A stretch of 64,000 bases of DNA, from positions 62,001 through 126,000 of IMG/VR virus record IMGVR_UViG_3300042350_004191; one strand, written 5' to 3'. Positions 4,559 through 63,700 of the stretch are shown here, piece by piece. Positions within the stretch are counted from its first letter, which is position 1, and the number at the start of each line of letters is the position of its first letter. The notes beneath the pieces were generated by a model, which saw only the letters and a program-made list of their open reading frames with translations, did not search any database and was not told the origin of the DNA. Made by a program: the position numbers and the translations under genes.

Positions 4559-4566
4559 GATAAATA
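4559..4566 (+). promoter_or_regulatory. T4-type late promoter (GATAAATA)
   Basis: Matches the TATAAATA late consensus at 7 of 8 positions; 7 nt before the gp13 ATG. Confidence 0.55.
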
Positions 4567-4573
4567 ATATACA

Positions 4574-5458
4574 ATGAATCCTGTTTTACCAAATCTATTT
4601 CATGGAAGCACAACTTTTAATTCTAAAATAAAAAGTTATGACCATTTAGCTCAAAGAGTTCGTAGAGCATTAGGAGAACCACTCGTAGAAGTCGAGGTTA
4701 GTAGTGAACAAATGTATGAAAATATAGATATTGCTTGTGAATATTTTACAAAATTCGGAGGTACTACTGAGGAATATCTAGTTTTTAGATCCGACCTTTA
4801 TGAACCAGGTATTGGTTTACGGATGGACAAGCTCTTTAGCGTTACACCTGAAATGTATAATGCTAACAGAAAAGACGAAACTACAAATGCTTCTTTAAGT
4901 GCTTCATATGATTTTGATATGGACGAATATCGTAAGGTCGTGGATGTGTTTTCTTTTGCTGAAGGTAACAATTCGGGGGTCAACACACTTTTTACAATCG
5001 AACATACAATTGCACAACAAGCATATTTTGGACATCTTCTAGGAAACGTAGGATATGATCTAATAACATGGCACGCTCTTAAAGAATGGTTAGATACAAG
5101 AGACAAACTTTTGGCACTCAGACCATATTTTAGATTTTCACCCGAATCACAATATTTAAAATTAATTCCTGAACCATCCAAACAACAAGTGTATTATGGA
5201 TTAATTGGTTGTCATGTCCAAAAACCAATCCGTGACATAGTAAGTCAATTGTGGGTTTATCGTTATACTTTAGCATTGGCTAAAATAACATTAGGTCATG
5301 TCAGAGGAAAATATGCTGGTACAAATTTATTTGGTAATCAAACAGTCAATTATACTGATATGATGAGTCAGGGTCTTGCTGAAAAAGAGAAGTTAGAACA
5401 AGAAATAACCACTGACCTTATTGATCGTGAGCCAATAACCGCATTTTTTGTTGGATGA
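4574..5458 (+). CDS. gp13: Neck protein, T4 gp13-like
   Basis: RALGEPLVEVEVS.EQ.YENID.A.EYF near the N-terminus and W..RY.LAL.K..LG..RGKY...FFVG at the C-terminus match gp13 signatures. Confidence 0.85.
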   Translation: MNPVLPNLFHGSTTFNSKIKSYDHLAQRVRRALGEPLVEVEVSSEQMYENIDIACEYFTKFGGTTEEYLVFRSDLYEPGIGLRMDKLFSVTPEMYNANRKDETTNASLSASYDFDMDEYRKVVDVFSFAEGNNSGVNTLFTIEHTIAQQAYFGHLLGNVGYDLITWHALKEWLDTRDKLLALRPYFRFSPESQYLKLIPEPSKQQVYYGLIGCHVQKPIRDIVSQLWVYRYTLALAKITLGHVRGKYAGTNLFGNQTVNYTDMMSQGLAEKEKLEQEITTDLIDREPITAFFVG

Positions 5459-5925
5459 TAAAACCTGTATTAGTTAAGAAAAATAAAAATTATAAACAAG
5501 GAAGATTCAATCCATTAAATCCTCACAAGTATAAAGGTACTCTTCCAATTTATTATCGTTCTAAATTAGAACTAAGTGCTATGAGAATGTTGGATAAAAA
5601 TCCTAATATTCTTACATGGGGATCTGAATCTGTTGTCATACCATACCTTTCTCCTCTAGATAATCGTATTCATAGATATTTTGTTGATCTTGTTGCGATG
5701 CTAAAAGAGTCGAATGGTAATATAAAAAAATTATTAATCGAAGTAAAACCATTTAAACAAACACAAAGACCTATGTTTAGTAATGCAAAGTCTCAAAAGA
5801 CTGTTTTATATGAAAATACACAGTATGCTATGAATATGGCAAAGTTTGATGCAGCCAAACAATGGTGTGCAAAAAAAAATTTTACATTTATTATACTAAC
5901 AGAGAAGGAAATTACATCAAAGTAG
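5455..5925 (+). CDS. gp4: Head completion protein, T4 gp4-like (TnsA-like nuclease fold)
   Basis: QGRFNPLNPHKYKG..IYYRS..E...WGSE..IPY.SPLDNRIHRYFVD..IEVKP..Q..N.AK..AA...C...F.ILTE. Confidence 0.9.
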   Translation: MIKPVLVKKNKNYKQGRFNPLNPHKYKGTLPIYYRSKLELSAMRMLDKNPNILTWGSESVVIPYLSPLDNRIHRYFVDLVAMLKESNGNIKKLLIEVKPFKQTQRPMFSNAKSQKTVLYENTQYAMNMAKFDAAKQWCAKKNFTFIILTEKEITSK

Positions 5926-5950
5926 TGTAAATAATATTATAACATAATAT

Positions 5951-6622
5951 ATGCAAAACCAAGCTTATCGCCTTCTTGTGGAAGAACCAACGTATGAAAT
6001 ACAATACTTGGTTGAAGAAAAGAATCGTAATTCACCTTCTAATCTTTATATTCATGGACCGTTCTTAATGGCAAATGAAGCAAACAAAAACAGACGCATA
6101 TATCCATTAGAAGAAATGGTTAAAGAAGTTGATAGATATTCTTCTGAGATGATCAAGGGTAATCGTGCTACAGGTGAATTAAACCATCCACAATCTCCTG
6201 AGATTAATCTTGAGAGAATCTGTCATATGGTGACAGAATTAAAACAAAACGGAAATATCTTTGAGGGTAAGTCAAGAATTCTTTCTACACCTATGGGTCA
6301 GATTGTTAGATCACTTATTCTCGATGGTGTTAAATTAGGCGTTTCTTCAAGAGCACTTGGTAGATTGGATGCTTCTGGTGAATATAATAAAGTTTCAGAT
6401 TTTAGATTAGTTGCTGTGGATGTTGTTGCTGATCCTTCTGTTCCTACAGCATTTGTAAATGGTATCCTTGAATCTAAACAATGGATTCTTTCCGAAAATG
6501 GCAACTTTGAACCATTATTTGATGCATTTGAGAAAAAGATAAGTAATCTTCCAAAAACAAATAAAGATCTATATTTAAAAGAACAAGTGATTGCATTCAT
6601 TAATGCACTCAAAAAAATGTAA
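5951..6622 (+). CDS. gp21: Prohead protease, T4 gp21-like
   Basis: N.NRRIYP, GELNHP, LGVSSRALG and DVVADPS motifs; TGTAAATA at 5926-5933 upstream. Confidence 0.93.
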   Translation: MQNQAYRLLVEEPTYEIQYLVEEKNRNSPSNLYIHGPFLMANEANKNRRIYPLEEMVKEVDRYSSEMIKGNRATGELNHPQSPEINLERICHMVTELKQNGNIFEGKSRILSTPMGQIVRSLILDGVKLGVSSRALGRLDASGEYNKVSDFRLVAVDVVADPSVPTAFVNGILESKQWILSENGNFEPLFDAFEKKISNLPKTNKDLYLKEQVIAFINALKKM

Positions 6623-6632
6623 ATAGTATTAT

Positions 6633-6854
6633 ATGAGAAACACAATTTCCAAATTTATCACAGCAATTTGCGAAAAGAATTATTCTTTGGCAGATTCTTT
6701 GTTAAAAGAAATTTTGACAGAAAAAATCAAAGCCAAAGTCAAGACAATAGCAGAAAAAAAAGAATATTGTTGCAACGATTGTAAACGCAAGAAAAAAAAT
6801 AATTCTTGTGGATGCAATAAAAATGATGAAACTGTATCTAGAAAGAGTAAATAG
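6633..6854 (+). CDS. Small prohead-associated protein with basic Cys-rich tail
   Basis: Lies between gp21 and gp22 with its own late motif TGTAAATA at 6618-6625; tail EYCCNDCKRKKKNNSCGC. Confidence 0.55.
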   Translation: MRNTISKFITAICEKNYSLADSLLKEILTEKIKAKVKTIAEKKEYCCNDCKRKKKNNSCGCNKNDETVSRKSK

Positions 6855-6865
6855 TTTTATAGCAT

Positions 6866-7753
6866 ATGGATATTTCATCAATTCTTAAAAACTTGGATCA
6901 AAACGTTTTAACAGAAGAAACAGCTTCAGCAATCGCAGAAGCATTTGAAACCGCTGTAAGTGAAAAAGTTACAGCCAAATTAACTTTAGAACTCGAAAGT
7001 GCTTTGTTGAATCAAGACAAAGAACACGCTGATAAATTAAAAAATTTAATCGAGGCTATTGATTTAGATCATACAAACAAACTTAAGGATGTTGTTGATG
7101 CAATCAATGAAAATCATACATTCAAATTAGAACAAATTGTTGAAATGTATAGAAAAGCATTAAATGAAAAAGCTGAAAATTTCAGCAATAAACTCATTAA
7201 TGAGATGAGCAATTATTTAGATCTTTATTTAGAAAAGAATCTTCCTACTACTCAACTCGAAGAGGCTGTTGCAAATACTTATGCAAAAGTTCAATTGGAA
7301 AGAATTAAAGGTCTTTTAAAATTTGATCCTGAAACTATCAATGAAGATGTTAAGAAAGTTCTTGAAACAGGCAATAGCCAAATCAAAGAACTTCAAGAAA
7401 AACTAAATGAATCTCATAATGCAAATAATCAACTTGCTTCTGAGATTGAAATTGCCAAGGCTGCTCTTGTCTTAGAAAAGAAAACCAGAGGGTTTTCTTC
7501 TGCTAAAAGAGAATACTTGACAAAGATCCTTTGTGATAAAACTCCTACGTATATTGAAGAAAATTTCAATTATGTAGTTGAGATGTTTGAAAAAAATGAC
7601 TCCGAAGAAAGGGAAGTTCTTGCTGAACAAGCTAAAAAGTCTTCTTTTTCCAAGGATGTGAAAGTTCCTACAGCAGTAATCAGTGAATCTGTTGTTGAGA
7701 GCAACGAGTTTAACCCAGTTACTGATTATTTAACTGAACTCAAAAGATCTTAA
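6866..7753 (+). CDS. gp22: Prohead core scaffold, T4 gp22-like
   Basis: Glu-rich coiled coil (I.EAFETAV.EKV, YLDLYLE) located between protease and major capsid gene. Confidence 0.85.
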   Translation: MDISSILKNLDQNVLTEETASAIAEAFETAVSEKVTAKLTLELESALLNQDKEHADKLKNLIEAIDLDHTNKLKDVVDAINENHTFKLEQIVEMYRKALNEKAENFSNKLINEMSNYLDLYLEKNLPTTQLEEAVANTYAKVQLERIKGLLKFDPETINEDVKKVLETGNSQIKELQEKLNESHNANNQLASEIEIAKAALVLEKKTRGFSSAKREYLTKILCDKTPTYIEENFNYVVEMFEKNDSEEREVLAEQAKKSSFSKDVKVPTAVISESVVESNEFNPVTDYLTELKRS

Positions 7754-7769
7754 TATAATTTTTAAGTTG

Positions 7770-7792
7770 TAGAAAAGAACGGTTCTTTTCTA
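7770..7792. promoter_or_regulatory. Inverted repeat/hairpin upstream of the major capsid gene
   Basis: TAGAAAAGAAC-G-GTTCTTTTCTA, perfect 11-bp arms. Confidence 0.6.
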
Positions 7793-7824
7793 GACGTTAT
7801 CCAAAATAGAAAGAAAAAGCATAT

Positions 7825-9261
7825 ATGAATTCAATCAAACCCTCAACAGGCTTCATTGACAAAGGCCGTGCTAGTACACTCTTGGAGAAATGGGCCCCGG
7901 TTCTGAACTACAGTTCAGATCGTGTTAAGCCAATCGAAGACGATCACAGTCGTCTCGCTACGGCTATCCTCATGGAAAACCAAGAACGCTGGTGCTTAGA
8001 AGAAGCTGGAAATTCCGCTGGTGTATCCGGTGGTGTTTACGGTGGTTCTGCTCCCGGTCAAACAGGTCTTTCAAACAGTGATAGTTACGCTTCAGGTGAT
8101 GCTCGCTTACCAAAGGTTTTAATCCCAATGGTTCGTCGTACATTCCCAGAGCTTATCACCAATGAAATTGTCGGTGTTCAGCCTATGGCTGGTCCAGTTG
8201 GTTTGGCATTCGCTATGCGCTACAAGTATGATACCGCAAGTCTCGGTGGTGCTGGAGTCGATGGTTATTCCAACGGCCCTCTCACTGTCGGTAATGATGG
8301 TGTTCCTCGTCAAAATGACGGTGCTGAACTCGGTTATCAAAGACTTGACACTCGCTTCACTGGTACAAGTGCTACATTCTTAAGCGGAAGCAACGATTTC
8401 AAATACGTTGCCGAAGATAAGGGTGTTGCTCAATTACTCAGTCAGTTTGAGTTAACTGGAAACATTCCTCAAGTTACACTTGAGTTCGCAAAGACTGCTG
8501 TTGAAGCTAAAACTCGTCGTTTAGCTGCTCGCTGGTCTGTTGAACTTGAGCAAGACATGAAGAACATGAACGGCCTCGATGTCGATTCTGAATTAACAAA
8601 CGCCATGAGCTATGAAATTCAGGCCGAAATTGACCGTGAAATGATCATGAGAATGGTCCAGATTGCTCTCAATGCGGGTGCTCCTAATGGATATAGTTTC
8701 TGGTACGCTGCTTCAGCCGATGCCCGTTGGCTCGGTGAACGCAATCGTGACTTCTACAGCAAGATTATTATCGAAGCCAACCGCATCGCTATTCGTAACC
8801 GCCGTGGTTCTGCCAACTTCATTGTTGCCACACCTCGCGTTTGCACAATCTTGGAGATGTTACCTGAGTTCCAGTGGATGCCCGTAAACGGCAACGTCAA
8901 CACCCAACCTACAGGCATTGCCAAGGTTGGTACTGTTGGTGGTCGTTTCACCATCTACCGTGACACACGTACAGAAGCTCAATTATTAGGTGGTGTTAGA
9001 AGCGCAAGCGATGCTATTGAGTACGCTTTATTAGGCTATAAGGGTCCTGAATATTATGATACTGGTATTGTATACTGTCCTTACATCCCTGTTATGATTC
9101 AGCGCACAATCGGTCCTAACGACTTCGCTCCTCGCGTTGGTCTTATGACTCGTTATGGTGTTGTTGATCATATCTTCGGTGCAAGCTTGTACTACCATGT
9201 CATTATCGTCAAGGGTCTTGGCACTGATAATGTTAACTCCGCTGGTCGCCTCTATCTGTAA
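7825..9261 (+). CDS. gp23: Major capsid protein, T4 gp23-like
   Basis: LLEKWAPVL, LMENQE, VGVQPMAGPVGLAFAMR, VEAKTRRL.ARWS.ELEQD, EIQAEIDRE, YCPYIP, FAPRVGLMTRYG. Confidence 0.97.
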   Translation: MNSIKPSTGFIDKGRASTLLEKWAPVLNYSSDRVKPIEDDHSRLATAILMENQERWCLEEAGNSAGVSGGVYGGSAPGQTGLSNSDSYASGDARLPKVLIPMVRRTFPELITNEIVGVQPMAGPVGLAFAMRYKYDTASLGGAGVDGYSNGPLTVGNDGVPRQNDGAELGYQRLDTRFTGTSATFLSGSNDFKYVAEDKGVAQLLSQFELTGNIPQVTLEFAKTAVEAKTRRLAARWSVELEQDMKNMNGLDVDSELTNAMSYEIQAEIDREMIMRMVQIALNAGAPNGYSFWYAASADARWLGERNRDFYSKIIIEANRIAIRNRRGSANFIVATPRVCTILEMLPEFQWMPVNGNVNTQPTGIAKVGTVGGRFTIYRDTRTEAQLLGGVRSASDAIEYALLGYKGPEYYDTGIVYCPYIPVMIQRTIGPNDFAPRVGLMTRYGVVDHIFGASLYYHVIIVKGLGTDNVNSAGRLYL

Positions 9262-9273
9262 TTTGATAGACTC

Positions 9274-9310
9274 AAAAAAACCCTGTAGGAGAAATCCTAC
9301 AGGGTTTTTT
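9274..9310. terminator. Rho-independent terminator, probably bidirectional
   Basis: A7-CCCTGTAGGA-GAAA-TCCTACAGGG-T6: 10-bp stem with a GNRA loop directly after gp23. Confidence 0.92.
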
Positions 9311-9318
9311 ATTATACC

Positions 9319-9346
9319 TTGACTTTCATAGTATTAGTGAGATAAT
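9319..9346 (+). promoter_or_regulatory. sigma70-like promoter
   Basis: TTGACT-16 nt-GATAAT with TG upstream of the -10; 10 nt before the ATG at 9357. Confidence 0.5.
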
Positions 9347-9356
9347 TAAACATCAG

Positions 9357-9590: not shown

Positions 9591-9606
9591 ATGATAAGTA
9601 TAAAAT

Positions 9607-10527: not shown

Positions 10528-10531
10528 TATA

Positions 10532-11017: not shown

Positions 11018-11079
11018 ATTGGGAGTTTACTATACTTATTCCTGTAAAGCAATTTTTCTCTTATAAAGGAGAAATTTAG

Positions 11080-11108
11080 TAGACATCTAATAAGATCTGG
11101 TATATTAT
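11080..11108 (+). promoter_or_regulatory. sigma70-like promoter
   Basis: TAGACA-17 nt-TATTAT, 8 nt before the gp44 ATG. Confidence 0.5.
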
Positions 11109-12616: not shown

Positions 12617-13117
12617 ATGGCTACAGTTCGACTAGATAATTTAATAAAACCTAAACAGGTTAATACTCAGCAAACTAAAATATCTGAAGAAACTTATGAT
12701 GGTATTACTTATACCGACCTACATTTAGACTTAACGATGGCTGTTGCCATAGGAACAGAAACGAGAAGAGGGTTCGCAAACGATATTAAAGTCGATTTTG
12801 ATGAACAAGCAATAAGAAATTCTGTATATAATTGTGTTTATACGAAACCTGGTGAAAAAGTATTAAATCCAGATTTTGGGATAAATTTAGATCAATTTTT
12901 ATTTGAACCAGCAACAAAGTCTAGAGGAGAATACATAGGCAGATATATATTATCTAAATTGTCTTCTTTGGAAAGACGAATAATTATTAATAAGATTAAA
13001 GTAACCGTCAATGAAGATATTAATACATACAATATTTTACTAATGTATGAAATTCCTTCATTAAAGAAAAATACTTCTATGGATATATTACTAGAATCTA
13101 AGTTTAACTCTAAATAA
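12617..13117 (+). CDS. gp25: Baseplate wedge protein, T4 gp25-like
   Basis: YTDLHLD...DEQAIRNSV.N...T.PGEK.LNP.FG.NL..FLFEP...ERRI. Start moved to ATG 12617, downstream of TATAAGTA at 12596-12603. Confidence 0.85.
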   Translation: MATVRLDNLIKPKQVNTQQTKISEETYDGITYTDLHLDLTMAVAIGTETRRGFANDIKVDFDEQAIRNSVYNCVYTKPGEKVLNPDFGINLDQFLFEPATKSRGEYIGRYILSKLSSLERRIIINKIKVTVNEDINTYNILLMYEIPSLKKNTSMDILLESKFNSK

Positions 13118-29279: not shown

Positions 29280-29282
29280 TAT

Positions 29283-29894
29283 ATGGATATTCAACTATAC
29301 GAAACTACATTTAATTTAATAAGTTCAAGCAAAATTATCAACATAGATCAGTTTGCTCCAATGAGGCTTACTATAGATCCTTTTAATGCTCTGCCATCAG
29401 AAAGTTCTACACAATTTGATTTCCAGTCAAAAATTTATAAAATCGTATATGATTGGGGTGATGGGCAAGTAGAAACTGTAAAAATAAAACCACCAACTTT
29501 TAATGCTCCAGTGACTATAAATTATCCTGTTTCCAAGGACTCTGGAGATCCCAGACGAGTAACAAAACAGCATATATACACGTTAGACAACGAATTTAAA
29601 AAAGTGTTTTTATTATCTGTTAAGATATACATGTTTGGTATAAAAAATCCGATAGAATATAGAGCTATAATCAGATTAAGTGCTCCACAATTAGACGGAA
29701 CTATAAAAGGGTTTTTCAAAAATATGCATTTAATAGACGCTAAAATGTATGGTACAGACAACAAGATTTTATATATTTTTGAAGGAAAAGAACCGTCTTG
29801 GATTATGCCTGTTTTAGTAGATTGGAGAGTAAGAAGAAACGATGATACTGTAGATGAAGGAGAAGACTTTTTTACATATCAACTAAATATCTAA
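29283..29894 (+). CDS. PKD-like virion protein
   Basis: IYKIVYDWGDG...KQHIY motif; inside the structural operon. Confidence 0.55.
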   Translation: MDIQLYETTFNLISSSKIINIDQFAPMRLTIDPFNALPSESSTQFDFQSKIYKIVYDWGDGQVETVKIKPPTFNAPVTINYPVSKDSGDPRRVTKQHIYTLDNEFKKVFLLSVKIYMFGIKNPIEYRAIIRLSAPQLDGTIKGFFKNMHLIDAKMYGTDNKILYIFEGKEPSWIMPVLVDWRVRRNDDTVDEGEDFFTYQLNI

Positions 29895-36114: not shown

Positions 36115-36140
36115 AACAATTAAAAAGATAAATAATTAAT

Positions 36141-38456: not shown

Positions 38457-38464
38457 TATAAATA
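38457..38464 (+). promoter_or_regulatory. Perfect T4 late promoter TATAAATA
   Basis: Exact consensus, only 5 nt before the ATG at 38470. Confidence 0.7.
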
Positions 38465-40212: not shown

Positions 40213-40240
40213 TTGATTTAAAATCTTTTAGAGATATAAT
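40213..40240 (+). promoter_or_regulatory. sigma70-like promoter of the glycosylation operon
   Basis: TTGATT-16 nt-TATAAT, 6 nt before the ATG at 40247. Confidence 0.6.
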
Positions 40241-40246: not shown

Positions 40247-41140
40247 ATGGAAAAAGTAGCCATAATACGTCCCGGTGCAATTGGAGATGTATTAATGTCT
40301 TTTAATTTTTTAAAACAATTAAAAGAAAAATACGAAGTTCATTATTTCTGTCATTCGTCCATCCATTCAGTATTAAAAAGCTTTGTAAAAAATAACAACT
40401 TACTGGATCATTTTTATATATTAGAAAATTATAATTCAGAAAATTTTTTAAAAACCATAAACCTAGTAGCTTATCCCTTGCATGAAGGATATCCTCATAA
40501 AAAAATGCAAAATCATTTATTATATTATTTTGCAAAAGAAATGGATGTAAATTTTACCTTTGATGATTTTGAATTAGATTTACCACCTTTACCTAAAAAA
40601 ATAAAAAACCAAAATTATCCTCGATATATTACGTTTCAAAACAAAACAGGATGGTCTGTCTATAAAGAATGGTGGGGTTGGCAGCAGTTAGTTGATATGA
40701 TTAAAACAAATTATCCAGAAATTGAAATATATCAGATAGGTGGTCCAAATGATCCACAAATCAATAATATAGATGGTTCGTTTTGTGGTGATACTTTTGA
40801 AGATAATTTAGCAGCACAAGCATGGTCCATTGGTCATATTGGTTTAGATTCTGTATTCGAGGTAACAACAAACATCCAATGGAGAAATAAAGGAAGAAAT
40901 AAAGGAATAATACTATTTGGGTCTACCCAACATGACGCAACCGGATATCCTTTTAACACTAATATATGTTTAAATTTACCGTGTCAGCCGTGTTTTAGAG
41001 AAGATCCTAAGATAAGTCAGATGTCATTAGGGTCTTGTATAAATCCACCAAATCAAGAATATGATAATCCAAAACATGCTTGTATGATAGGAATTACGCC
41101 TGAAATGGTTTATCTAAACACCTTGAAATTGTTCAGTTAG
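40247..41140 (+). CDS. GT-B glycosyltransferase, GT9 (heptosyltransferase)-like
   Basis: RPGAIGDVLM, IYQIGG, HIGLDS, IILFGST, CQPCF...C...CM..ITPEMV. Confidence 0.82.
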   Translation: MEKVAIIRPGAIGDVLMSFNFLKQLKEKYEVHYFCHSSIHSVLKSFVKNNNLLDHFYILENYNSENFLKTINLVAYPLHEGYPHKKMQNHLLYYFAKEMDVNFTFDDFELDLPPLPKKIKNQNYPRYITFQNKTGWSVYKEWWGWQQLVDMIKTNYPEIEIYQIGGPNDPQINNIDGSFCGDTFEDNLAAQAWSIGHIGLDSVFEVTTNIQWRNKGRNKGIILFGSTQHDATGYPFNTNICLNLPCQPCFREDPKISQMSLGSCINPPNQEYDNPKHACMIGITPEMVYLNTLKLFS

Positions 41141-41151
41141 TATATTAGTAT
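41123..41151 (+). promoter_or_regulatory. sigma70-like promoter
   Basis: TTGAAA-17 nt-TAGTAT, 5 nt before the ATG at 41157. Confidence 0.45.
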
Positions 41152-43857: not shown

Positions 43858-45925
<2,068 letters not shown>

Positions 45926-45945
45926 TAAATATTTATCATTTTTTC

Positions 45946-46284
45946 TTATAAATTATCTTTAATATAGATAACTCTATTAAGATGTTCTCCGTCTGAAAAT
46001 TTTATAAGAATTTCAGCATAGCCTTTGTCTAAATTGATACTAAAGTCTTCATAAGATTCACCTAGATTTTTTGATTCTAAATAAAGACTTTTTACTAAAT
46101 TAATGGCATCTTCGGTATGTAAATTTTCCGCTTTAATTGAGGTAAACCCTGAACTAGGATAAACTAGAGTATATCTTGAATTATCTAATTCTTCATTGTA
46201 ATTTAAATTTAATAAAGTTAAAGAATCTGTTTGTTTATCAAGATAAACATTTAAATACTGATCATATATTTCGACATTTTTCAT
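45946..46284 (-). CDS. Hypothetical protein
   Basis: ORF abuts the protease stop; likely start ATG 46284 (MKNVEIY). Confidence 0.55.
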   Translation of the reverse strand: MKNVEIYDQYLNVYLDKQTDSLTLLNLNYNEELDNSRYTLVYPSSGFTSIKAENLHTEDAINLVKSLYLESKNLGESYEDFSINLDKGYAEILIKFSDGEHLNRVIYIKDNL

Positions 46285-46286
46285 AA

Positions 46287-47510
46287 TTAAATTACTGTTA
46301 AACCAGTTTGCCAATATCTTTTATTTCCTTCGTCAACATATGGCAAATCTGATTTTCCTTCTACATACTTAACTCTTTCTTTCCCTAAATCAGTCAAAGC
46401 TGTAGTTTGTCCATCCCACGACGATAATTGTAATGTTGAACAAATATTATCGATTCTACAAGCATATGATGGACTATTATCTCCTAAATCTGAACCAGCA
46501 AAAGTTAAACCAACCACTTTCCATGCGCTTAAAGATTGGCTTTCTGGATTTATTAAAGCACAAACAGCACTTCCAGAATCTCCACCGCTACTAGCAACAG
46601 TAAATGTTCCTCTATAAGTTAAACATGATGTAAAATTTAAAATATTTCCACTAAAATTAACACCTACAGAAACTCCGACTTGAGTAGCAGTAAGAGAACA
46701 CGATTCAGAACCCCAAGGTATAGAACCTGGCCATCCCACAGGACCAGTTGTTGCACCTGATTTAAAAATTGGATTTTTATTTATGACCAAATTATCAATT
46801 TCAGAGGTAGTGGCAAATTCAAGATTTCCATAATTTAAATTTAATTGTTTAAAAGATGTAAGTGTGTTTACTCTACTTGAATTTGTTATTGCTACAACGG
46901 CTGCATCAATTGTGTTCCCACTTGCTAAAAGCGGAACATACCTTTTTAATTTCATTGTAGATTGATTTGACCAAGGGAAAGCTTGGTATACTGTTGTTTG
47001 TCTATTGCTAAAACTTGAAGACAATAAAGATGCGTCTCTTTCTGTATAAGCAGCAACGTGTGCATTTGTTAATGCAACAAGAGTATTGTCGGTGAGATCT
47101 TTACAGATAAGTCCCATAGTTCCTGTAAATGCACTGTTTCCTAAATTTAATGGATTATCTATTGATATTCTTGTTCCACCGATATATGTTGTTCGAGATG
47201 ATCTATGTAATGAAACGGGTTCAACTGAATCACTAATTTCATAGCAAGATGGGTATGCAACAGCTTGTGGTATTTGAATAACATCAGTAGTAAAAATACT
47301 ACCATCTTCTGTTGTTATTGTTGATGGTAAAATTTCATTTTGTGGAATAGATGATAATGGTTTTTTTTCTGTAACACCAAAAACTATAGAAAGTTCGTTT
47401 GTTAATTTTCCATCAACTTCTTTAAATCCATAACCAACCGAATGAACATATTCTGGAGTTTCTTGTAAAAGCTTTTGTGTAAGCTTTTCTATATTTTCAA
47501 TATTATTCAT
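46287..47510 (-). CDS. Nal1-like trypsin-fold serine protease
   Basis: Triad motifs GTMG...LTNAHV, DAAVV, KSGATTG, GGDSGSAV and VVGLTFAG; N-terminal VGYGFK..G..T....I...V..KKP...L...EILP....TDVI as in Nal1-type proteins. Confidence 0.82.
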   Translation of the reverse strand: MNNIENIEKLTQKLLQETPEYVHSVGYGFKEVDGKLTNELSIVFGVTEKKPLSSIPQNEILPSTITTEDGSIFTTDVIQIPQAVAYPSCYEISDSVEPVSLHRSSRTTYIGGTRISIDNPLNLGNSAFTGTMGLICKDLTDNTLVALTNAHVAAYTERDASLLSSSFSNRQTTVYQAFPWSNQSTMKLKRYVPLLASGNTIDAAVVAITNSSRVNTLTSFKQLNLNYGNLEFATTSEIDNLVINKNPIFKSGATTGPVGWPGSIPWGSESCSLTATQVGVSVGVNFSGNILNFTSCLTYRGTFTVASSGGDSGSAVCALINPESQSLSAWKVVGLTFAGSDLGDNSPSYACRIDNICSTLQLSSWDGQTTALTDLGKERVKYVEGKSDLPYVDEGNKRYWQTGLTVI

Positions 47511-48212
47511 ACGATACAAATGTTGTATATGTTGAAGATGGTATTGTGCTTACAGGTTCATCTATTCTATAAACTTTTATGCCATTAAAATATAAATCAT
47601 TAACAGTTGCTGGTGTTGGATCTGTTCCAGAAATATAAAATTTAAAACCTCTAATATTACTATAACCGTTACGTGTTATATCATTTTCAGTATAAGTTGT
47701 TGAATTTAAAGTTACTGAATAACTATAAGAATTTAAATTAGTTTTTTTCAAAACTATTCTTGCTACCATTGTTGGTGAATAATCTTGTCCTGTGCTTATT
47801 CCATTTATAATATAATTTCCTGCTCCTCCACCACCAACATTAAAATTAAAAACTTCTTGGGACCATTCTGTATCACTGTAAGCACTAAACCCCTTATTTC
47901 CGTTTCTAAAATTTACAGATATTGCTGCGGATAATGCATAACCTACCGACAAACTTGATGGTAAGTTTCTTTTTAAATCTATAAAACTTCCCGCTGGATT
48001 TCCATATGCCCCAAAAGATACTCCATTTGTATCTATTAAATTACCGAATGATTGCCCTATAAATGCACCAGCCGTACCGTTTGATGTAAAATCCCATGCA
48101 TTGAAACCATAACCAAAATTAGATGCTCCAATAAAAGATCCTCCATAGTTATTGGCTCTATCTTCACCAATAACAGAATTCGATCCTGCTAAAGATCCTA
48201 AAAATGTTCTCA

Positions 48213-48213
<1 letters not shown>
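47503..48213 (-). CDS. Beta-sandwich (lectin-like) hypothetical protein
   Basis: Likely start ATG 48213 (MRTFLGSL), TAATG-coupled to the upstream collagen; Gly/aromatic-rich, ends NDLYFNGIKV... Confidence 0.5.
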
Positions 48214-50933
<2,720 letters not shown>

Positions 50934-52220
50934 TTACATTATATTTATCAACAATTCACCATCAATAGTATAAAGCGGTAAACCGTTTATTGAATAAAGT
51001 GCAAGATTGTCAATATAACTAGTAGTTATTTGATTAATTTTTATTCCACTAATTCCTCTAAAAAATGTTGAATCTTTAGATTGTGGAAAAAGATTATTTA
51101 TCTTGTTTTTTATATCTTTAGTCATTCTCCCATAACCTGCTTCATTTTGTACTATAAGATCTAATGTTACTGGATAATCATATGGAAATAAATCTGTATT
51201 TAATTGAGGCAATTCAAAATAAATCAAACCAGAATCATAAGAAAATGCTGAAACAGGAACTGCATTAAATGAAGGATAAATTTGTTCCATATAGGTTCCT
51301 GAAAATGGATTAAAATACGAAACAGGTGTTGTAAAAATGTTTGGATTATCGGCACTTAAGTATAAGTTTGTTAAATTTGAAAAACTTTCACCAAAAACAG
51401 CAACACTTTTATGATCAGTTGTTTGACCAGAAAGAAAATAAAAACTTGTAGGACTTACATATCTAATCTGAGGTCTAGCTGATATGGCTGTGCTAAAAGT
51501 TTCATATTGATCTAGGTCTGTTATTAAATCGTCAGATATTAAATCTTGTTCATTGACCGGAACATAATCTGTATTGATTACATATATCTTTTTATAAGTT
51601 TCTATATAATCTGTACTCTTAAATAACCATCCTTTTATAGTAAAAGAAGTATCTGCTGTCACTCTAAACGATTGGTTTGCCCCTAAATCTGTTGGATATT
51701 GTACGTTTATATTACCAGACCATAATACTTCTGTTCTTATTTCATAATCTTTTCCATAAGACACAGGTAATTTCCAAGATATAACTATATAAGGGTCGCA
51801 ATAAGGAACAAAGTTAGATATAATTTGATCCATATCGGTCTGATATTTGGTTATAATAGTCATATTAATACCAATATTAATCGGAACAGGTTGTCTGATT
51901 CCTTTTATAAATTCTCTTTCATCACCCGCTATAGACAATGCATCAATATTAAAACCACTGTTTTTATTAAAAACTCTAGATTGATCTCTTTGAATCGAAC
52001 CGATGTTTATAGCTACGGCGGGTACAGTTAGACCACCGGGTGCTGGCTTTTTAAGCGTTTCTACAACCCTTTGTTTAGGTGCATATACAAAATTAACTTT
52101 AAATTGACTCTGTGGAATATTACTGTCTTTAGCAAATCTTTTTACTATAATATCATTGAATGCAGAGGTAAATTGCTCAATTAATGTTTGTATTTCTTTA
52201 TTATAAGTCCATTTCTTCAC
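50934..52220 (-). CDS. gp15: Tail terminator/sheath stabiliser, T4 gp15-like, with C-terminal IPT/Ig-like extension
   Basis: F...FNDI.V.R, YAPKQR, D.SR..N, PVPINI...M.I.TK...DMDQII..F.PY, FTIKGWLF; followed by PQIRYVSP...V.GESF. GTG start. Confidence 0.85.
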   Translation of the reverse strand: MKKWTYNKEIQTLIEQFTSAFNDIIVKRFAKDSNIPQSQFKVNFVYAPKQRVVETLKKPAPGGLTVPAVAINIGSIQRDQSRVFNKNSGFNIDALSIAGDEREFIKGIRQPVPINIGINMTIITKYQTDMDQIISNFVPYCDPYIVISWKLPVSYGKDYEIRTEVLWSGNINVQYPTDLGANQSFRVTADTSFTIKGWLFKSTDYIETYKKIYVINTDYVPVNEQDLISDDLITDLDQYETFSTAISARPQIRYVSPTSFYFLSGQTTDHKSVAVFGESFSNLTNLYLSADNPNIFTTPVSYFNPFSGTYMEQIYPSFNAVPVSAFSYDSGLIYFELPQLNTDLFPYDYPVTLDLIVQNEAGYGRMTKDIKNKINNLFPQSKDSTFFRGISGIKINQITTSYIDNLALYSINGLPLYTIDGELLINIM

Positions 52221-52229
52221 TTATAATAT

Positions 52230-53888
52230 TTAGTGTATTCTATTTAAAAAATGCTTTGGTAATATATCTTTATTTTCTGTAATCGCTCTAGTGGCGTTTC
52301 CATCAAGGATATAAGTTATAGAATAATCGTCTTTGGATCTAGTACATCTACCAGCCATTTGAACCAGATTATTAAGCATCGAGTATGCATATTGATTAGA
52401 GTCTGAATCAAATTTTTTCTTAATTCTTTTAGAACTTAATGGAAGATAAGGTGCTTTTACAATAATCTGAAATCTACCTAAATCGCCATCTAAGCTAATT
52501 CCCGTATCTAAAGAAGGACTGATCAATACCGTTGGATGTAATGCTCTTTTATGTTGTTCCAAAATTTCCTCGTTAGTTATACCTTCTTGTCTAAAAAGAA
52601 ACCTAGAATCATTCTTTAAATACTTGTAAAATTCCTGTGTAATTGAATTGGTGTGTGTATGGATTACACCCTTATAGTCTTTGTGTTTTTTACACAACTC
52701 TATACAAGCATTAATAATATTATCTAAATCTTTATTTTTGGAGCTATAAGATAGATTATATTTTGTGGTACAATAAATTGGTGATTTTTCAGAATTGAAT
52801 GGGGAAAGTAGTTCTATATATTCGTATTCATTTTCAGATATACCCATACTTTTAGCAAAATGTTTGTGATTACTCAATGTGGCTGACATTAACAAAACTT
52901 TATCAGCAACATTGAATATTTCTTTAAACAAGGGCCTTATATCATAAGGAACAAAGATAACTCTCTTTGCGCTTTTTTCTTCAATTAAAAAATTACATTC
53001 GTCCCAGTATTCAATAGCTTTGGACATAGAACCTTGCAATCTAGAAAGCTTATTAAGCTTCTGCATCAATTTAGAATATTGTGCATCAGCAGAAGTTATT
53101 TTTGATATTTTCAATGCCTGTTTTTTTAAATCTTTTATCTGATCAAGAACTTGATTGTATATATCAAATAACCAACTTCTAGCTTCAGTTATATTATCAG
53201 TAATTAATTTTTTATGAGCTATATCACAAGATTTTAATAAAGAATAGTTTATTTCTATAGTGAAATGACCAACAAGCTCGTCTTCGATACCATCTGCTTC
53301 ATCACAAACAAACATTTCACGTTTTTGAAGAAAAGGTCTTAGATTAAAAAAACTTCTATAGTTTAAAATAGATGTTTTAGAATATATACTTTTGTTTTTC
53401 GCTTCATAATAAGGACATATACAAGAAGAAAAACAATTAGTTTTAATCTTTTTATCAAAAATACATGGCGCATTGTCTGTTGTCTGGTTCAAATCCACCT
53501 GACACTGATAATTGTTTTTACCTTTAAAGGTATGATGTTCTGGAAACAAACTTAAATATTGATCTTGTAATGCTTTGGTCATCGTTAGTATAAAACTACC
53601 ATATTTTGGTTTGTTAATATGGTCCATGTCATATAGATAATCTCCCATGGCACTTTTCCGATAAAGTTGATAAGCAAGAATGTCCCTTTTTCTTTCTGAA
53701 TCAATTTCTGTAGTGCTTTCAGAAGCAGCTAAAGCAATATGACTCTTTCCTATGCCTGTTGGCATACAGGCAATAACGTATTTTTTTCCACTAGCCCAAA
53801 TTTGTTCTATTTTTTCAAGAGCTTCAATTTGTGATGGTCTAGGTTCATATTGTTTAGGAAAAAAATCAATTAGGTTGAAGTTTTGCAA
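52230..53888 (-). CDS. DinG/XPD-family SF2 helicase with Fe-S cysteines
   Basis: Q motif PRPSQ, MPTGIGKS, KGKNNYQC...APC...C...CPYY, DEADG, LMSATL, GISL, QMAGRCTRSKDDY. Confidence 0.9.
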   Translation of the reverse strand: MQNFNLIDFFPKQYEPRPSQIEALEKIEQIWASGKKYVIACMPTGIGKSHIALAASESTTEIDSERKRDILAYQLYRKSAMGDYLYDMDHINKPKYGSFILTMTKALQDQYLSLFPEHHTFKGKNNYQCQVDLNQTTDNAPCIFDKKIKTNCFSSCICPYYEAKNKSIYSKTSILNYRSFFNLRPFLQKREMFVCDEADGIEDELVGHFTIEINYSLLKSCDIAHKKLITDNITEARSWLFDIYNQVLDQIKDLKKQALKISKITSADAQYSKLMQKLNKLSRLQGSMSKAIEYWDECNFLIEEKSAKRVIFVPYDIRPLFKEIFNVADKVLLMSATLSNHKHFAKSMGISENEYEYIELLSPFNSEKSPIYCTTKYNLSYSSKNKDLDNIINACIELCKKHKDYKGVIHTHTNSITQEFYKYLKNDSRFLFRQEGITNEEILEQHKRALHPTVLISPSLDTGISLDGDLGRFQIIVKAPYLPLSSKRIKKKFDSDSNQYAYSMLNNLVQMAGRCTRSKDDYSITYILDGNATRAITENKDILPKHFLNRIH

Positions 53889-54138
53889 GTTCTTCCTCCT
53901 TCAATAATTGTTTAAAAATATCCAAATCTACTTGTTTTCTTAAACATAGACATGGTGTATATGTAAAATCGGTCAAAGATTTATCAATGTATCCCCTACC
54001 ATAGCACTTTTTACAGCTTTGACTGGGTTTTTTCTTTAGTGGAAACTGGCCTTGACTTAATAAGCCGACATCTTCTTTTAATACTTGAAAATATTTTCCG
54101 GTAAAAATATTATAGCAATTTATAGTTTGATCATTCAT
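53866..54138 (-). CDS. Small Zn-finger protein
   Basis: CKKCYGRG...PCLC. Confidence 0.65.
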   Translation of the reverse strand: MNDQTINCYNIFTGKYFQVLKEDVGLLSQGQFPLKKKPSQSCKKCYGRGYIDKSLTDFTYTPCLCLRKQVDLDIFKQLLKEEELAKLQPN

Positions 54139-55268: not shown

Positions 55269-55667
55269 TTATTTAGATATTTGTTTTAATTCTTCAAGTA
55301 TCTGTTTTTGGTTTTTAATTTCTCTTTTAGAGCATTCTCTAAAGATGTGTTCTTGTATTTCGTCCTCATCCTTTGTTTTAGGTTTTTTAATTGTTTTCTT
55401 TTTTAAATATAATAATTTTTTTGTGTATTTTTGTAATAAAACATTTAAAAATTTTGTAATCAATGTTGTATTACCATATAAATCATAATTTAAATACCAT
55501 CTATTAACTGTTTGATTTATAATTTTACAATTTTCTTGATTGGACATAGATAACCATCTCAATAACATAAATGTTGATGGTTTTTCTTCAACTGAAGAAA
55601 TATCTATTTTTGTCTTTTTTAAGATAAAATTTAAAAAACAAAAGATGTCACAGGCTTGATTGTTCAT
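55269..55667 (-). CDS. Probable clamp loader small subunit, T4 gp62-like
   Basis: FMLLRWLSM...IIN..VN followed by a Lys-rich segment and SKREI resembles gp62. Confidence 0.55.
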   Translation of the reverse strand: MNNQACDIFCFLNFILKKTKIDISSVEEKPSTFMLLRWLSMSNQENCKIINQTVNRWYLNYDLYGNTTLITKFLNVLLQKYTKKLLYLKKKTIKKPKTKDEDEIQEHIFRECSKREIKNQKQILEELKQISK

Positions 55668-56873: not shown

Positions 56874-56902
56874 ATTTTACACTACATATTTATAATTTTC
56901 AA
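56874..56902 (-). promoter_or_regulatory. sigma70 promoter with a perfect late promoter nested in its spacer
   Basis: Minus strand TTGAAA-17 nt-TAAAAT with TG; TATAAATA at 56887-56894. Confidence 0.65.
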
Positions 56903-58446: not shown

Positions 58447-58456
58447 CCTAGCTTAT

Positions 58457-58485
58457 AGGATATAGTATTTTTAACAGAAAATCAA
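58457..58485 (-). promoter_or_regulatory. sigma70-like promoter of primase
   Basis: Minus strand TTGATT-17 nt-TATCCT. Confidence 0.45.
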
Positions 58486-58487
58486 AC

Positions 58488-59363: not shown

Positions 59364-59385
59364 ATAACTGTTTATATTATTTATC

Positions 59386-60293: not shown

Positions 60294-60300
60294 ATACTAG

Positions 60301-60329
60301 AGTTTAGTATATGTTACTAAGAATGTCAA
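60301..60329 (-). promoter_or_regulatory. sigma70 promoter
   Basis: Minus strand TTGACA-17 nt-TAAACT, 7 nt before the ATG at 60293. Confidence 0.75.
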
Positions 60330-60694
60330 ATATTTTTTTCAGTAGGAATAGATCTTAACAATTCTTCGATTTGTTTTTCTTTTTCTTGTAAAGTGTCAGC
60401 ATTAACACTACCAGAACTTAAATCTGAAATAATTCTATCAACATTTTCATCTTCTCGATTTAATAAAGATAATAAACGAATTATTTTTTTAACCCAATCT
60501 ACTTTAATACTATCTTCTTCTACTTCGTCTAGTGCTGATGGTTTATTGATGTTTAATTCTTGAGTAGTATCATTAGCATCACCAATATTGGTATCTGGAG
60601 TCATTTCAGGCATAACATCAACATTCTGTTGTTGATCTTGTTCAGCCAAATAATCTTTTGCAATAGTTTTGTATAAATCAGAAAATTGTCCCAT
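60326..60694 (-). CDS. Acidic hypothetical late protein
   Basis: TGTAAATA on the minus strand at 60701-60708; N-terminus MGQFSDLYKTIAKDYLAE. Confidence 0.65.
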   Translation of the reverse strand: MGQFSDLYKTIAKDYLAEQDQQQNVDVMPEMTPDTNIGDANDTTQELNINKPSALDEVEEDSIKVDWVKKIIRLLSLLNREDENVDRIISDLSSGSVNADTLQEKEKQIEELLRSIPTEKNI

Positions 60695-60729
60695 ATGATA
60701 TATTTACAACGTATATGAAATAATTTAAG

Positions 60730-60745
60730 GATAAATATAAATAAT
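60730..60745 (+). promoter_or_regulatory. Tandem late promoter GATAAATATAAATAAT
   Basis: Contains perfect TATAAATA at 60736-60743, 11 nt before the ATG at 60755. Confidence 0.7.
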
Positions 60746-60754
60746 CTATCCAAT

Positions 60755-63700
60755 ATGCAATATATAAGTACCGAAGGTTTATTAATCGATACAGTAAACA
60801 AAGAAGCAAGAATTTTAGGAGTTACTAATACTGTTAGTTCAAATTCTGTTGCTTTTTTAGGAGATAACAATAATACATCTTTTTCTAGTATATCTTTCGG
60901 CGGAACTAGTAATAGCTCTAATAACAATGCTTTAACGGTTGCTGGTTCAAACAACGTTGTGGATGGTTCTTTATCATTTGATAGTACTAGCAGTCAAATA
61001 TCTTCTGATTCAGTTGATTTTAAAAGTATAAACTTAAAATCTCAGGACGGTTCGGTTTCTTTTAAAACAAATTCTAGCAGTTTGACTGCAAGTTTAGGTA
61101 TACAAAGTTCAAACGATGCTATAAACAACAATTCTGCTGCAATTTTAAGTAGGAATAACAATATCAATAACTCTTCTGTTGCAATAAACAGCATTAATAA
61201 CACATTAAATTTAAGTTCTTTTAATGTTTTAACAACCAACAGCAATACAAGAGATAGATCTGCATTGTTTAATTCTCTTTCTACAACAGCATCTCTTTCA
61301 TCTGTTGGTATTTTAGCAAATTTTTCAAATATTCAAAATTCATCTGTTGTATTAAACTCTTTAAGCAGTAATACAAACAACAAATCTATAGAATTTTTAG
61401 GTAATAACAACACAGTTACACAAAATTCTTTAGGAATAAATTCAACAAATACTAATATAAACAACAATTCTGTTAGTATAGGGGGAACCAATAATTTTGT
61501 TTCCGTTAATTCATTAAACATCAATTCTTCAGCATCAAATATTACAAATCAATCAGAAGGATTGTTTTTAGATAGAACCACATTAGATAATAATTCTTTT
61601 AGTATTGGTGGTAGTGGAAATAACATAAGAAATTCTTCGATTGGTATCAATCCTTTAAGTTCTAACATACTTGAAAGCTCAGTAGGAATTTATACTGTAA
61701 GAAATACAGTAAACAATAAATCTTTTGCTGTAAATGCGGACACAACTACGGTCAACCTTAGTTCTTTAGGTATAAATGTATCTGAATCTAATATTAATAA
61801 TCAATCAGAAGGCATTTACTTAAACAAGACTAATGTAAACAATAATTCTATTGCTATAGGAAGTGATAGTATAAATGTTTCAGATCGTTCTTTTGTTTTA
61901 AATACAACAAATTCTAATGTATCTAGCAATTCTTATGGAGCTTTTACTAATAATACCAACCTAAACCTCAGTTCATTTGCGATTGGTGGTTTTAATAATA
62001 CGCTGGCAAACAGATCTTTCGGTATTAATTCAAATACATCCAACATATCTAGTAATTCTGTTGGGATTTATACTACAAATACAAATGTAAACCTTAGTTC
62101 ATTCGCAGTCGGTGGTCGGAATAATACTGTGGTGAATAATTCTTTTGGTTTGAATTCTTTAAATTCAAACATATCTGGTAATTCTGTAGGGATAAATGTA
62201 AATTCATCTAATTTACTATTGAGTTCATTAGGTATAAACTCTTTAAACAGTTCTATAACTTCAGGCTTTGCTCACAATTCAATTAGCGTACAATCCATAA
62301 GCTCTATAGCATTAAACACGACAAATTCTCAATTGAGCAGTTCTGTTATTGTAATAGGTAACAATAATGCAGTGAACAATTCAGTATTGTTTAATGGTAA
62401 TAACAATCTTACACAGGACAATTCGGTTGCGATTTCTTCTAATTCAAACAATCTAAGTGCAAATGCATTTTCTACATTATCAAATACTGTAACAGCAAGA
62501 AGAAATGCTACTGTTTTTAATTCTACAAACAGCGTAGTATCTTCGAATGCAATACAAATAAATGGTATTAATAACAATGTTGATAATAATAGTATTTCTA
62601 TTTTAGGAAGCACAAATACTATAACCTTAACCTCTGTTGGTATTGTTTCTGATGTTAGTAGAATCATTAACAACTCAACAAACATTAACAGTTTAAGAAA
62701 TATTGTTTCTGCAAGATCTGTTTCAATAAACACAGGTTCTACAACTTTGATAGATAAAGGAATTGCAATCGGTTCTTTAAATTCAAACGTATCTACTGGT
62801 TCTATAAGTTTTAATAGTAATAGCGTAATTTTACAATTAAGTGGTATAGATATATCTGGACGCAGTAATACTGTCCAAAATAGATCCACAAATATAAACG
62901 GAAGTAATAACACGGTCCAAAATGACAGTGCTACATTTAATACTATAAACAGTACAGCCTCTGCAAATTCACTAATCTTTGGTGGTGGCTTAAACAGATC
63001 AGTTATCAATTCACTTGTAATGAATTCAAGTGGTAGTAGAGCATCTGATGGTAGTTCTGTCATAGGTGGAAGATCTACTACCGCAAATTTAAGTTCTGCT
63101 GCAATTAATACATTCAATTCTCAAATAAATGGCATTAACTCTTTAGTTTTGGGTGGTAGTGGTCATAATTTTAGATCAGGAAATTCTGTATATTTAGGCG
63201 GTAAAGATAACGAAGCTGCTTCTACATACGGAGGAACTACCATTGGTGATAAATCTATAATTTTAGGTGGTGAAAAGGTTAGAATAGGATCTAATAGTAT
63301 TGCAGTTGGAGGACTAAACAACAATTTACAAAATGGTTCTATTACACTCGGTGGTAGTGGAAATGATACAGCATCTTTCAGTAATGTTGTTATTATAGGA
63401 AGAAACAACGTGACAGCAAACAGGGGTGACATAGTTTATCTTCCTGAAATTAATGCTTTGGGTAACTTAACAATCACAGGTAACGTATCCGCTTCTGGTA
63501 CATTTACAAATGTCAGTACTACCACAGGCACAGTTTCTTCTTTGGAATTAAATAACCTTTTATATCCTTTACATACTCTGGTTGTTAATCAAAACACACA
63601 AGCAGGAAATACTTTTGAAACTGCATTGTTTAGTTTTTACAACAACCCAAGAATGTCTGTTAACAACACTGGCGTTGCAATTAATACATTTGAAAGAACA

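Follow-up and report, generated by a model that had tools for sequence, protein, structure and literature searches.

Transcription units in a widespread clade of freshwater phages place their promoters almost directly against their genes, with a -10-type element that ends about 6 nucleotides (nt) before the first start codon. The phage studied here is a distant T4-like myophage that belongs to this clade. The stretch of DNA analysed, referred to as the window, comprises the 64,000 nt between bases 62001 and 126000 of the IMG/VR record IMGVR_UViG_3300042350_004191, a genome of 210,586 bp that is estimated to be 99% complete and has a guanine-plus-cytosine (GC) content of 32.3%. Two kinds of elements occupy the position in front of the start codon, one resembling the late promoters of T4 and the other resembling sigma70-type promoters. 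We consider it likely that early and late promoters placed at the starts give leaderless or near-leaderless mRNAs for the promoter-proximal genes, with initiation independent of a Shine-Dalgarno (SD) sequence and with coupled translation of the downstream cistrons. An earlier interpretation of the window, made from the letters alone and called here the sequence-only reading, had proposed near-leaderless, SD-free expression from both promoter classes throughout the window. For the statistics, 220 confident genes were called by a simple procedure combining open reading frames (ORFs) with a codon score, which was also applied to all control phages; three complete relatives (G002, G003 and G004, with about 60% gp55 identity) were compared, giving four genomes together with the studied phage. 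Coordinates refer to the window unless the genome is named, and strands are given as plus or minus.

The late-type motif TAA[A/G]TA (TAARTA) ends 4-10 nt upstream of 41 of the 220 starts genome-wide, at spacers of 5 nt (8 genes), 6 nt (10), 7 nt (11), 8 nt (6), 9 nt (3) and 10 nt (3). An AT-matched null, generated by a first-order Markov model trained on the AT-rich proximal 30 nt, yields 8.3±2.9 such starts with a maximum of 21 in 1,000 runs, and the expectation that the motif is positionally enriched over an AT-rich background was thereby borne out. At 3,195 internal decoy ATGs the motif occurs at a rate of 0.34%, which places real starts 54-fold above the decoys, and its reverse complement occurs 7 times. 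Upstream stop codons are reused by only 4 of the 41 motifs, the other 37 being independent of stops. The sequence-only reading had described the element as an octamer of the T4 type; this was too long, as the conserved core is a 6-7-mer, (A)TAA[A/G]TA, and the first T of the T4 octamer is at most weakly conserved. A weak first T has also been reported for other T4-like phages (PMC1524935).

The sigma70-type class is defined by position rather than by abundance. A generic promoter scan of the window returned no excess of raw sigma70-like matches over shuffled sequences (106 against 111±10.5 and 84 against 108±10.8), and since raw counts equal those of shuffles in DNA this rich in A and T, only the position relative to start codons is informative. 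Measured in this way the signal is strong: 34 of 58 TTGnnn-N16-18-TAnnnT pairs lie at spacers of 5-11 nt, which make up 7 of the 66 positions considered (p=7e-19), and such pairs precede 13.6% of real starts as compared to 1.0% of decoy ATGs. The corresponding -35 element is visible as a pile-up of TTGA at -40 to -31 from the ATG. Both motif classes peak at a spacer of 6 nt in all four complete genomes.

Several features support the view that both classes have the properties of genuine early and late promoters, as far as this can be judged from sequence. The phage encodes a homologue of the late sigma factor gp55 (ORF at genome positions 135198-135977), which is matched by T4 gp55 in a phmmer search with E=8e-13 and shares 39% identity over 114 amino acids and 38% over 100 amino acids with the annotated late sigma factors of the phages HTVC008M and P-SSM2, respectively; a Pfam search gave no match for this ORF. 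The motifs are furthermore divided according to gene function. The late motif stands before homologues of the virion genes gp13, gp6, gp15, gp17 and gp19 at 5-10 nt and before those of gp18, gp25 and gp21 at 12-17 nt, and sigma70-type pairs stand before homologues of the replication genes gp44, gp61, gp43, gp41, gp32 and uvsY. The late core precedes no replication-gene homologue, and there are no crossovers between the two classes. Reciprocal-best orthologues retain the late class in 41 of 59 cases as compared to a background of 29/245, and the sigma70 class in 23 of 61 cases (background 24/245), in flanks that are otherwise unalignable. Compared with codon-shuffled genes, coding regions contain about half as many TAARTA on each of the two strands (129 against 256±16 and 133 against 296±18), and of the 15 hexamers that share the composition of TAAATA, none is depleted in genes as strongly as TAAATA itself (ratio of 0.54 as compared to 0.80 for the next). 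Depletion on both strands fits a signal read at the level of DNA and an avoidance of spurious promoters whichever way they face.

The spacing of these elements has direct consequences for the messages that they would produce. The -10 hexamer of sigma70 promoters occupies positions -12 to -7. The T4 late motif occupies positions -13 to -6 relative to the transcription start (PMC1524935). Taken together, these geometries predict leaders of 0-5 nt, mostly 0-2 nt. Of the 41 late-class genes, 29 have a predicted leader of 0-2 nt, and the prediction is -1 to 2 nt for 18 of the 30 genes in the sigma70 class. The proposal of leaders of about 0-4 nt was therefore close to what the geometry gives, as a prediction about 5' ends; leaderlessness itself stays an inference. 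The base at -1 is T in 68% of late-class genes, as compared to 33% in the background, in agreement with initiation at the A of the ATG with a pyrimidine at -1 and a purine at +1. When the same pipeline is applied to other phages, the spacer between TAAATA and the start codon is 24-31 nt in T4 and 21-26 nt in P-SSM2, whereas it is mostly 5-8 nt in the studied phage, so that the clade appears to lack about 20 nt of leader. Together with SD usage, which is 60% in T4 and 10% here, these spacers bear out the contrast with T4 that had been drawn from the window.

Across the 220 genes of the genome, 41 are abutted by a late motif and 30 by a sigma70-type pair, 85 lie 3 nt or less from the upstream gene, 62 belong to neither category and 2 have only an SD sequence. 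The corresponding numbers for the 59 genes of the window are 12, 9, 21, 17 and 0. On this basis about one third of the phage messages are probably made with little or no leader. To call the pattern window-wide is too strong, given that an abutting promoter is found at 21 of the 59 window genes, while 21 are internal cistrons and 17 fall into neither class. Some genes of the remaining class have a motif 11-17 nt away, as is the case for those starting at 5951, 6866, 12617, 59363 and 60755.

SD usage was measured as the percentage of starts at which the anti-SD duplex reached -4.5 kcal or a more stable value, using one script for all phages and an intragenic control. In the studied phage 10% of starts are paired, which equals the control of 10-11%; pairing energies at starts are thus at control level. 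The same measure gives 60% in T4 (control 6-9%), 53% in the Pelagibacter phage HTVC008M (control 8%), 49% in the Thermus phage phiYS40 and 28% in the Prochlorococcus phage P-SSM2 (control 35%). The frequency of G at positions -14 to -5 of starts is 4-16% without a peak, and no G-rich signal is present anywhere upstream. Abutting internal genes have SD-like pairing in 17% of cases as compared to 5% of spaced genes, the latter being below the intragenic control of about 10%. The description of the starts as SD-free accordingly holds for the population, with a few real SD sequences as exceptions. The clearest is AAGGAGG (-11.7 kcal; 53889..53902, minus strand), which is separated by 6 nt from the TTG (53888) that starts a Dda-like helicase gene, and weaker sites are found before the minus-strand starts at 54138, 60018 and 43856. 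The SD sequences of the helicase gene and of the gene at 60018 are not conserved in the relatives.

These observations can be assembled into a model of gene expression. Host sigma70-type promoters (TTGAnn-N16-17-TAtAAT) would drive the early and replication genes, and the gp55-type late motif (A)TAA[A/G]TA would drive the virion genes. RNA polymerase would start on the A of the ATG or 0-5 nt from it, which would yield a leaderless or near-leaderless mRNA for the promoter-proximal gene, and initiation would occur through the 5'-terminal start codon and not through SD pairing. Most downstream cistrons overlap the preceding stop codon or lie directly next to it, as in ATGA and similar arrangements; lacking an SD sequence, they would presumably depend on reinitiation coupled to upstream termination or on SD-independent ribosome entry at A/U-rich RNA. 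Leadered genes, including gp23 and those with a motif 11-17 nt away, would be a minority, and use of SD sequences would be sporadic.

The gene for the major capsid protein, gp23 (7825-9261), is a clear member of this minority. In its leader (7771..7824, plus strand), which has no promoter motif adjacent to it, a 10-bp hairpin at 7771-7791 precedes an A-rich tract that contains TAGAAAGAAAAAG. The region between gp22 and gp23 (7751-7824; compared over loci L005-L083) has a hairpin followed by ATCCATAGGAGAA (or TAGAAAGAAA) across the clade, ATCCATAGGAGAA being the AGGAG-bearing form that is present in many relatives. The hairpin and ATCCATAGGAGAA may serve in the processing or stabilisation of the major capsid mRNA. 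Some relatives with 90-92% identity have gained GTAAATA 9 nt before the gp23 ATG. Downstream of gp23, a hairpin followed by a T-run resembles an intrinsic terminator (9275..9310, plus strand; read by eye and unlisted by the consensus scan) and marks off the gp23 transcript against the sigma70-type promoter that follows. The presence of ATCCATAGGAGAA in the gp23 leader of many relatives suggests that the host ribosome is probably SD-competent and that SD avoidance is a design of the phage and not proof of an SD-blind host.

A number of points weigh against the model. An abutting promoter is found at only about 32% of genes genome-wide, and the late hexamer occurs 395 times in the genome and is thus not a sufficient promoter alone. 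The sliding clamp gp45, which takes part in late transcription in T4, was not detected in the whole genome with T4 gp45 in phmmer or with the Pfam models PF09116 and PF02916, a divergent homologue being possible. The idea that coupling between neighbouring genes is unusually frequent was rejected, given that the abutting fraction of 0.47 is ordinary for phages (0.42 in T4). Leaders of 1-5 nt, corresponding to spacers of 7-11 nt, weaken 5'-terminal initiation in E. coli. The start codon of the gp15 homologue at 52220 is GTG, which is kept in two of the three complete relatives and would be odd for a strictly leaderless mRNA. For gp23, the claim of near-leaderless expression has to be given up: an RNA-library contig that belongs to a relative with about 92% identity begins 47 nt upstream of the gp23 ATG, which is a lower bound for the leader, the RNA runs consisting of assembled gp23 contigs from relatives of about 90-93% identity that cannot define 5' ends. 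More generally, most translation could come from read-through polycistronic transcripts.

This last point leads to the alternative that deserves the most attention, namely that the promoters are real, and that most protein is made from long read-through polycistronic mRNAs, within which these start codons are internal and are reached by S1-type, SD-free ribosome entry on unstructured RNA rich in A and U, leaderless initiation being a minor by-product of compact packing. It would account for the 85 of 220 genes that abut an upstream gene and have no SD sequence, and are hence translated as internal cistrons, and for gp23, the most expressed gene, being leadered and without an adjacent promoter; convincing terminators are also few in the window, and P-SSM2, which is SD-poor yet leadered, illustrates that SD-independent internal initiation exists amongst T4-like phages. 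Compaction alone, however, leaves unexplained why two unrelated promoter types share a spacer mode of 6 nt in four genomes, and why orthologues keep this spacing while the sequence of the spacer varies. P-SSM2 and T4 are equally compact, yet have spacers of 21-31 nt, and we therefore regard this alternative as unlikely, while taking it seriously.

Two further explanations question the motifs themselves. In a genome without SD sequences, A/T-rich hexamers that sit roughly at the position of a ribosome-binding site (RBS) might be translation-initiation enhancers, that is, sites for the ribosome or S1 that replace the SD sequence. Such a role is hard to reconcile with the matched TTGA -35 element at N16-18 of the sigma70 class, with the split of the motif types by early and late gene function and the presence of a gp55 homologue, or with the avoidance of TAARTA in the antisense strand of genes as well, for which a signal acting in translation would have no need; in addition, the analogous -10 element of Deinococcus is not replaceable by an RBS (PMC12340547). 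We hold this explanation to be very improbable. An artefact is harder still to credit. It would require chance matches at 32% GC, upstream genes that end in TAA or wrongly called starts with SD-led ones further downstream, and it can point to the raw sigma70-like matches being no higher than in shuffles, to the TAA contained in TAAATA and the 4 of 41 motifs that reuse an upstream stop, and to the simple in-house rule by which starts were called. The positional statistics speak decidedly against it (41 against the null of 8.3±2.9, 54-fold over decoys, p=7e-19 for the sigma70 class), as do the 37 of 41 motifs independent of stops and the lock of the motifs to the first ATG of each ORF. In 57-58% of orthologue pairs, moreover, the alignment begins no later than the third residue, and a G-rich upstream signal is missing.

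Leaderless expression of the kind proposed in our model has its closest functional precedents in phage phiYS40 and in the genes of Deinococcus-Thermus in which a -10 element is adjacent to the ORF. Middle and late mRNAs of phiYS40 are reported to be mostly leaderless, with altered IF2/IF3 (PMC3594737). Like the studied phage, phiYS40 is a large myophage of about 32% GC, and in the same pipeline its -10 elements end about 6 nt before promoter-proximal starts. It differs in that about half of its genes (49%), mostly internal cistrons, carry a strong GGAGG, of which the studied phage has essentially none, and in that no gp55-type late motif was seen there, whereas the studied phage combines sigma70-type and T4-late-type classes. 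In Deinococcus a -10 element of the TAnnnT type is found a few bp before the ORF and gives leaderless mRNA at about one third of genes, a proportion similar to the approximately 32% with an abutting promoter in the studied phage, and this ORF-adjacent motif cannot be replaced by an RBS (PMC12340547). The Deinococcus system is nevertheless cellular and of high GC, its remaining genes carry an RBS motif, and it can often do without its -35 element; the studied phage, by contrast, conserves a clear TTGA at -35. No link was found between the studied phage and Deinococcus-type hosts.

The likeness to T4 lies in transcription. T4 late genes are served by TATAAATA at -13 to -6 and by gp55, gp33 and gp45, and the studied phage has a gp55 homologue and (A)TAA[A/G]TA before homologues of late genes; T4 motifs, in contrast, lie 24-31 nt from starts with SD leaders, as compared to 5-8 nt without SD here. 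The SD-poor marine cyanomyophage P-SSM2 shares the lack of SD enrichment and differs in its late motif, which is 21-26 nt from starts. Flavobacterium likewise lacks SD sequences, while its TAnnTTTG box and 24-nt leaders are not matched in the studied phage. The literature searched contains no description of leaderless expression in a T4-like phage. What is new is the geometry on T4-type late and sigma70-type promoters, the virtual absence of SD sequences even at internal cistrons, and the conservation of both across a large clade.

If the model is correct, T4-type early and late transcription can be coupled to leaderless translation across an abundant environmental lineage, in a group of phages that has so far supplied textbook examples of SD-led, RegA-type translational control. 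In genomes of this clade, starts would be mis-placed by gene finders built on an RBS model, and the spacing from promoter to ATG could instead be used as a start predictor. The pattern also offers a feature for host prediction at the level of sequence, combining canonical sigma70 promoters and tolerance of leaderless mRNA with a profile that is not Bacteroidota-like, and the clade would be a natural system for studying how leaderless translation and reinitiation sustain very high expression of virion genes. We speculate further that the whole clade, represented by at least 467 IMG/VR contigs, gave up SD-led initiation and relies on 5'-terminal starts and reinitiation by reprogramming host translation, so that phage messages are translated selectively and host mRNAs are shut off. 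By analogy, such reprogramming might consist of a shifted balance of initiation factors as in phiYS40, or of disabled SD-dependent initiation; we consider this extended scenario a long shot.

With regard to the host, the promoters are of the canonical TTGACA/TATAAT type and do not follow the -7/-33 box pattern of Bacteroidota. The motif TAnnTTTG occurs 18 times in all upstream regions, without a positional peak. Flavobacterium mRNAs have a median leader of 24 nt, are leaderless in 5.5% of cases, lack SD sequences and are made from promoters with a TAnnTTTG box at -7 and a TTTG box at -33 (PMC9723704). The missing TAnnTTTG signal and the leadered mRNAs of Flavobacterium together make a Bacteroidota host unlikely. 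The use of SD sequences by the SAR11 phage HTVC008M indicates that the studied pattern is more than a habit common to phages with streamlined hosts, and a tblastn comparison with the stretch of HTVC008M that carries its ribosomal protein S21 gene revealed no S21 homologue. The host inference of the sequence-only reading thus survives in part: canonical sigma70 promoters and a host that is probably not Bacteroidota stand, with no narrowing beyond that and with a pattern unlike that of SD-using HTVC008M. The phage carries 14 tRNA genes, mainly for A/U-ending codons and including a tRNA-Ile with the anticodon TAT, as well as a complete one-piece transfer-messenger RNA (tmRNA) gene (genome 683-1144, minus strand, locus L084; Rfam RF00023, 143 bits) with the predicted tag ADEEMLLAA, all of them outside the window. 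The 14 tRNAs for mostly A/U-ending codons and the tmRNA hint at a host of higher GC.

A search of GTDB with gp23 returned one 3.2-kb contig in the metagenome-assembled genome 'Proteobacteria bacterium LLD_334'. The contigs of this bin measure 1-3 kb, with GC contents between 27% and 64%; the bin is chimeric and the match was dismissed as host evidence. The species-representative genome LLD_334 is contaminated by phage, given that it contains the contig with the gp23 fragment and a second contig with a tmRNA and tRNA-Asp of the phage clade (L095, L096). The gp23 protein itself has only about 34% identity to the major capsid protein of any cultured phage, and relatives of it are encoded on 467 IMG/VR contigs, the best 80 of the 467 being at least 74% identical. 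DNA runs with the phage sequence are lake or freshwater metagenomes. Homologues of T4 proteins in the genome comprise gp4, gp6, gp13, gp15, gp17-21, gp25, gp41, gp43, gp44, gp46/47, gp61, uvsW/X/Y and gp55.

In the window, all ten late-type sites listed by the sequence-only reading are present, as TAAATA or TAAGTA ending 5-9 nt before the starts, and two can be added beyond its list. On the plus strand TAAGTA (1587..1592) lies 9 nt before ATG 1602, and (GA)TAAATA (4561..4566) lies 7 nt before ATG 4574 of the gp13 neck homologue, where both motif and spacing are kept in about 20 diverged relatives. TAAATA at 6620..6625 ends 7 nt before ATG 6633, its TAA doubling as the stop codon of the gp21 protease homologue. 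Further sites are TAAGTA at 9595..9600 (6 nt before ATG 9607), TAAATA at 13111..13116 (10 nt before ATG 13127 of the gp6 baseplate homologue, the first of the two additions), TAAATA at 29884..29889 (8 nt before ATG 29898) and (GA)TAAATA at 36129..36134 (6 nt before ATG 36141). The full T4 octamer, TATAAATA, is present at the site 38459..38464, which ends 5 nt before ATG 38470 and for which T4 geometry predicts a start exactly at the A of this ATG. On the minus strand TAAATA is found at 45930..45935 (8 nt before ATG 45921 of a collagen-repeat tail fibre gene), at 52227..52232 (6 nt before the GTG start 52220 of the gp15 homologue), at 55270..55275 (7 nt before ATG 55262, the second addition) and at 60701..60706 (6 nt before ATG 60694). 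The gp15 orthologues start with GTG in G002 and G004 and with ATG in G003, and the late motif is present in 3/3. The 60-nt divergent region at 60695-60754 contains back-to-back late-type motifs for the gene at 60694 (minus) and for that at 60755 (plus; 2,209 amino acids), the latter being ATAAATATAAATA, 11 nt before ATG 60755.

The seven sigma70-type sites on the earlier list were likewise recovered, with a -35 of the form TTGAnn (TAGACA in the case of 11117), a spacing of N16-17 and a -10 ending 5-10 nt before the starts. On the plus strand these are TTGACT-N16-GATAAT (9319..9346), ending 10 nt before ATG 9357 just 3' of the gp23 terminator, TAGACA-N17-TATTAT (11080..11108), 8 nt before ATG 11117 of the gp44 clamp-loader homologue, TTGATT-N16-TATAAT (40213..40240), 6 nt before ATG 40247 with a predicted leader of 0 nt, and TTGAAA-N17-TAGTAT (41123..41151), 5 nt before ATG 41157. 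On the minus strand, TTGAAA-N17-TAAAAT (56874..56902) ends 8 nt before ATG 56865, and TTGATT-N17-TATCCT (58457..58485) ends 10 nt before ATG 58446 of the gp61 primase homologue, whose orthologues in G002 and G003 retain a sigma70-type pair. TTGACA-N17-TAAACT (60301..60329), 7 nt before ATG 60293, keeps its class in 3/3 complete relatives. A further minus-strand pair, TTGATG-N16-TATAAT (50938..50965), lies 10 nt before ATG 50927 and is ambiguous in class because of an overlapping TAAATA, which ends 14 nt before the same start.

Three consecutive genes of the window (43858-50927, minus strand) encode tail-fibre-like proteins with collagen triple-helix repeats. Residues 333-489 of the protein encoded at 48213-49682 gave tblastn matches to a minor tail protein of Gordonia phages, which were discarded as a host clue, the Pfam annotation of this protein being confined to a collagen repeat at residues 239-284. 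Outside the window, a compositional island at about genome positions 14600-39400 (L084, L085) has about 42% GC as compared to about 31% elsewhere and a poor fit to the codon usage of the phage. It contains an rIIA-like gene (27502-29499), many small minus-strand ORFs and a repeated early-promoter family, TTGACC..ACAAGTAAT..TAGTA, located 12-13 nt before ATGs, and several of its genes have G-poor, CA-rich leaders. A gene for a protein of 345 amino acids resembling adenylosuccinate synthetase is located at genome positions 204453-205490 (minus strand; locus L091:18453-19490). This short PurA-like gene was considered as a candidate PurZ of a Z-genome, which was dropped given that cellular PurA matches it with E=2e-55 and phage PurZ with E=2e-21. 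Elsewhere the genome encodes GMP reductase/IMPDH-like, class II ribonucleotide reductase, ThyX and FolE2 proteins. Finally, a cluster at genome positions 137750-143707 (L088:11750-17707) comprises genes for methyltransferases, NAD-dependent epimerase/dehydratase and glycosyltransferases of families 2/7C, 11 and 6, and its sugar modifications may target DNA or surface glycans.

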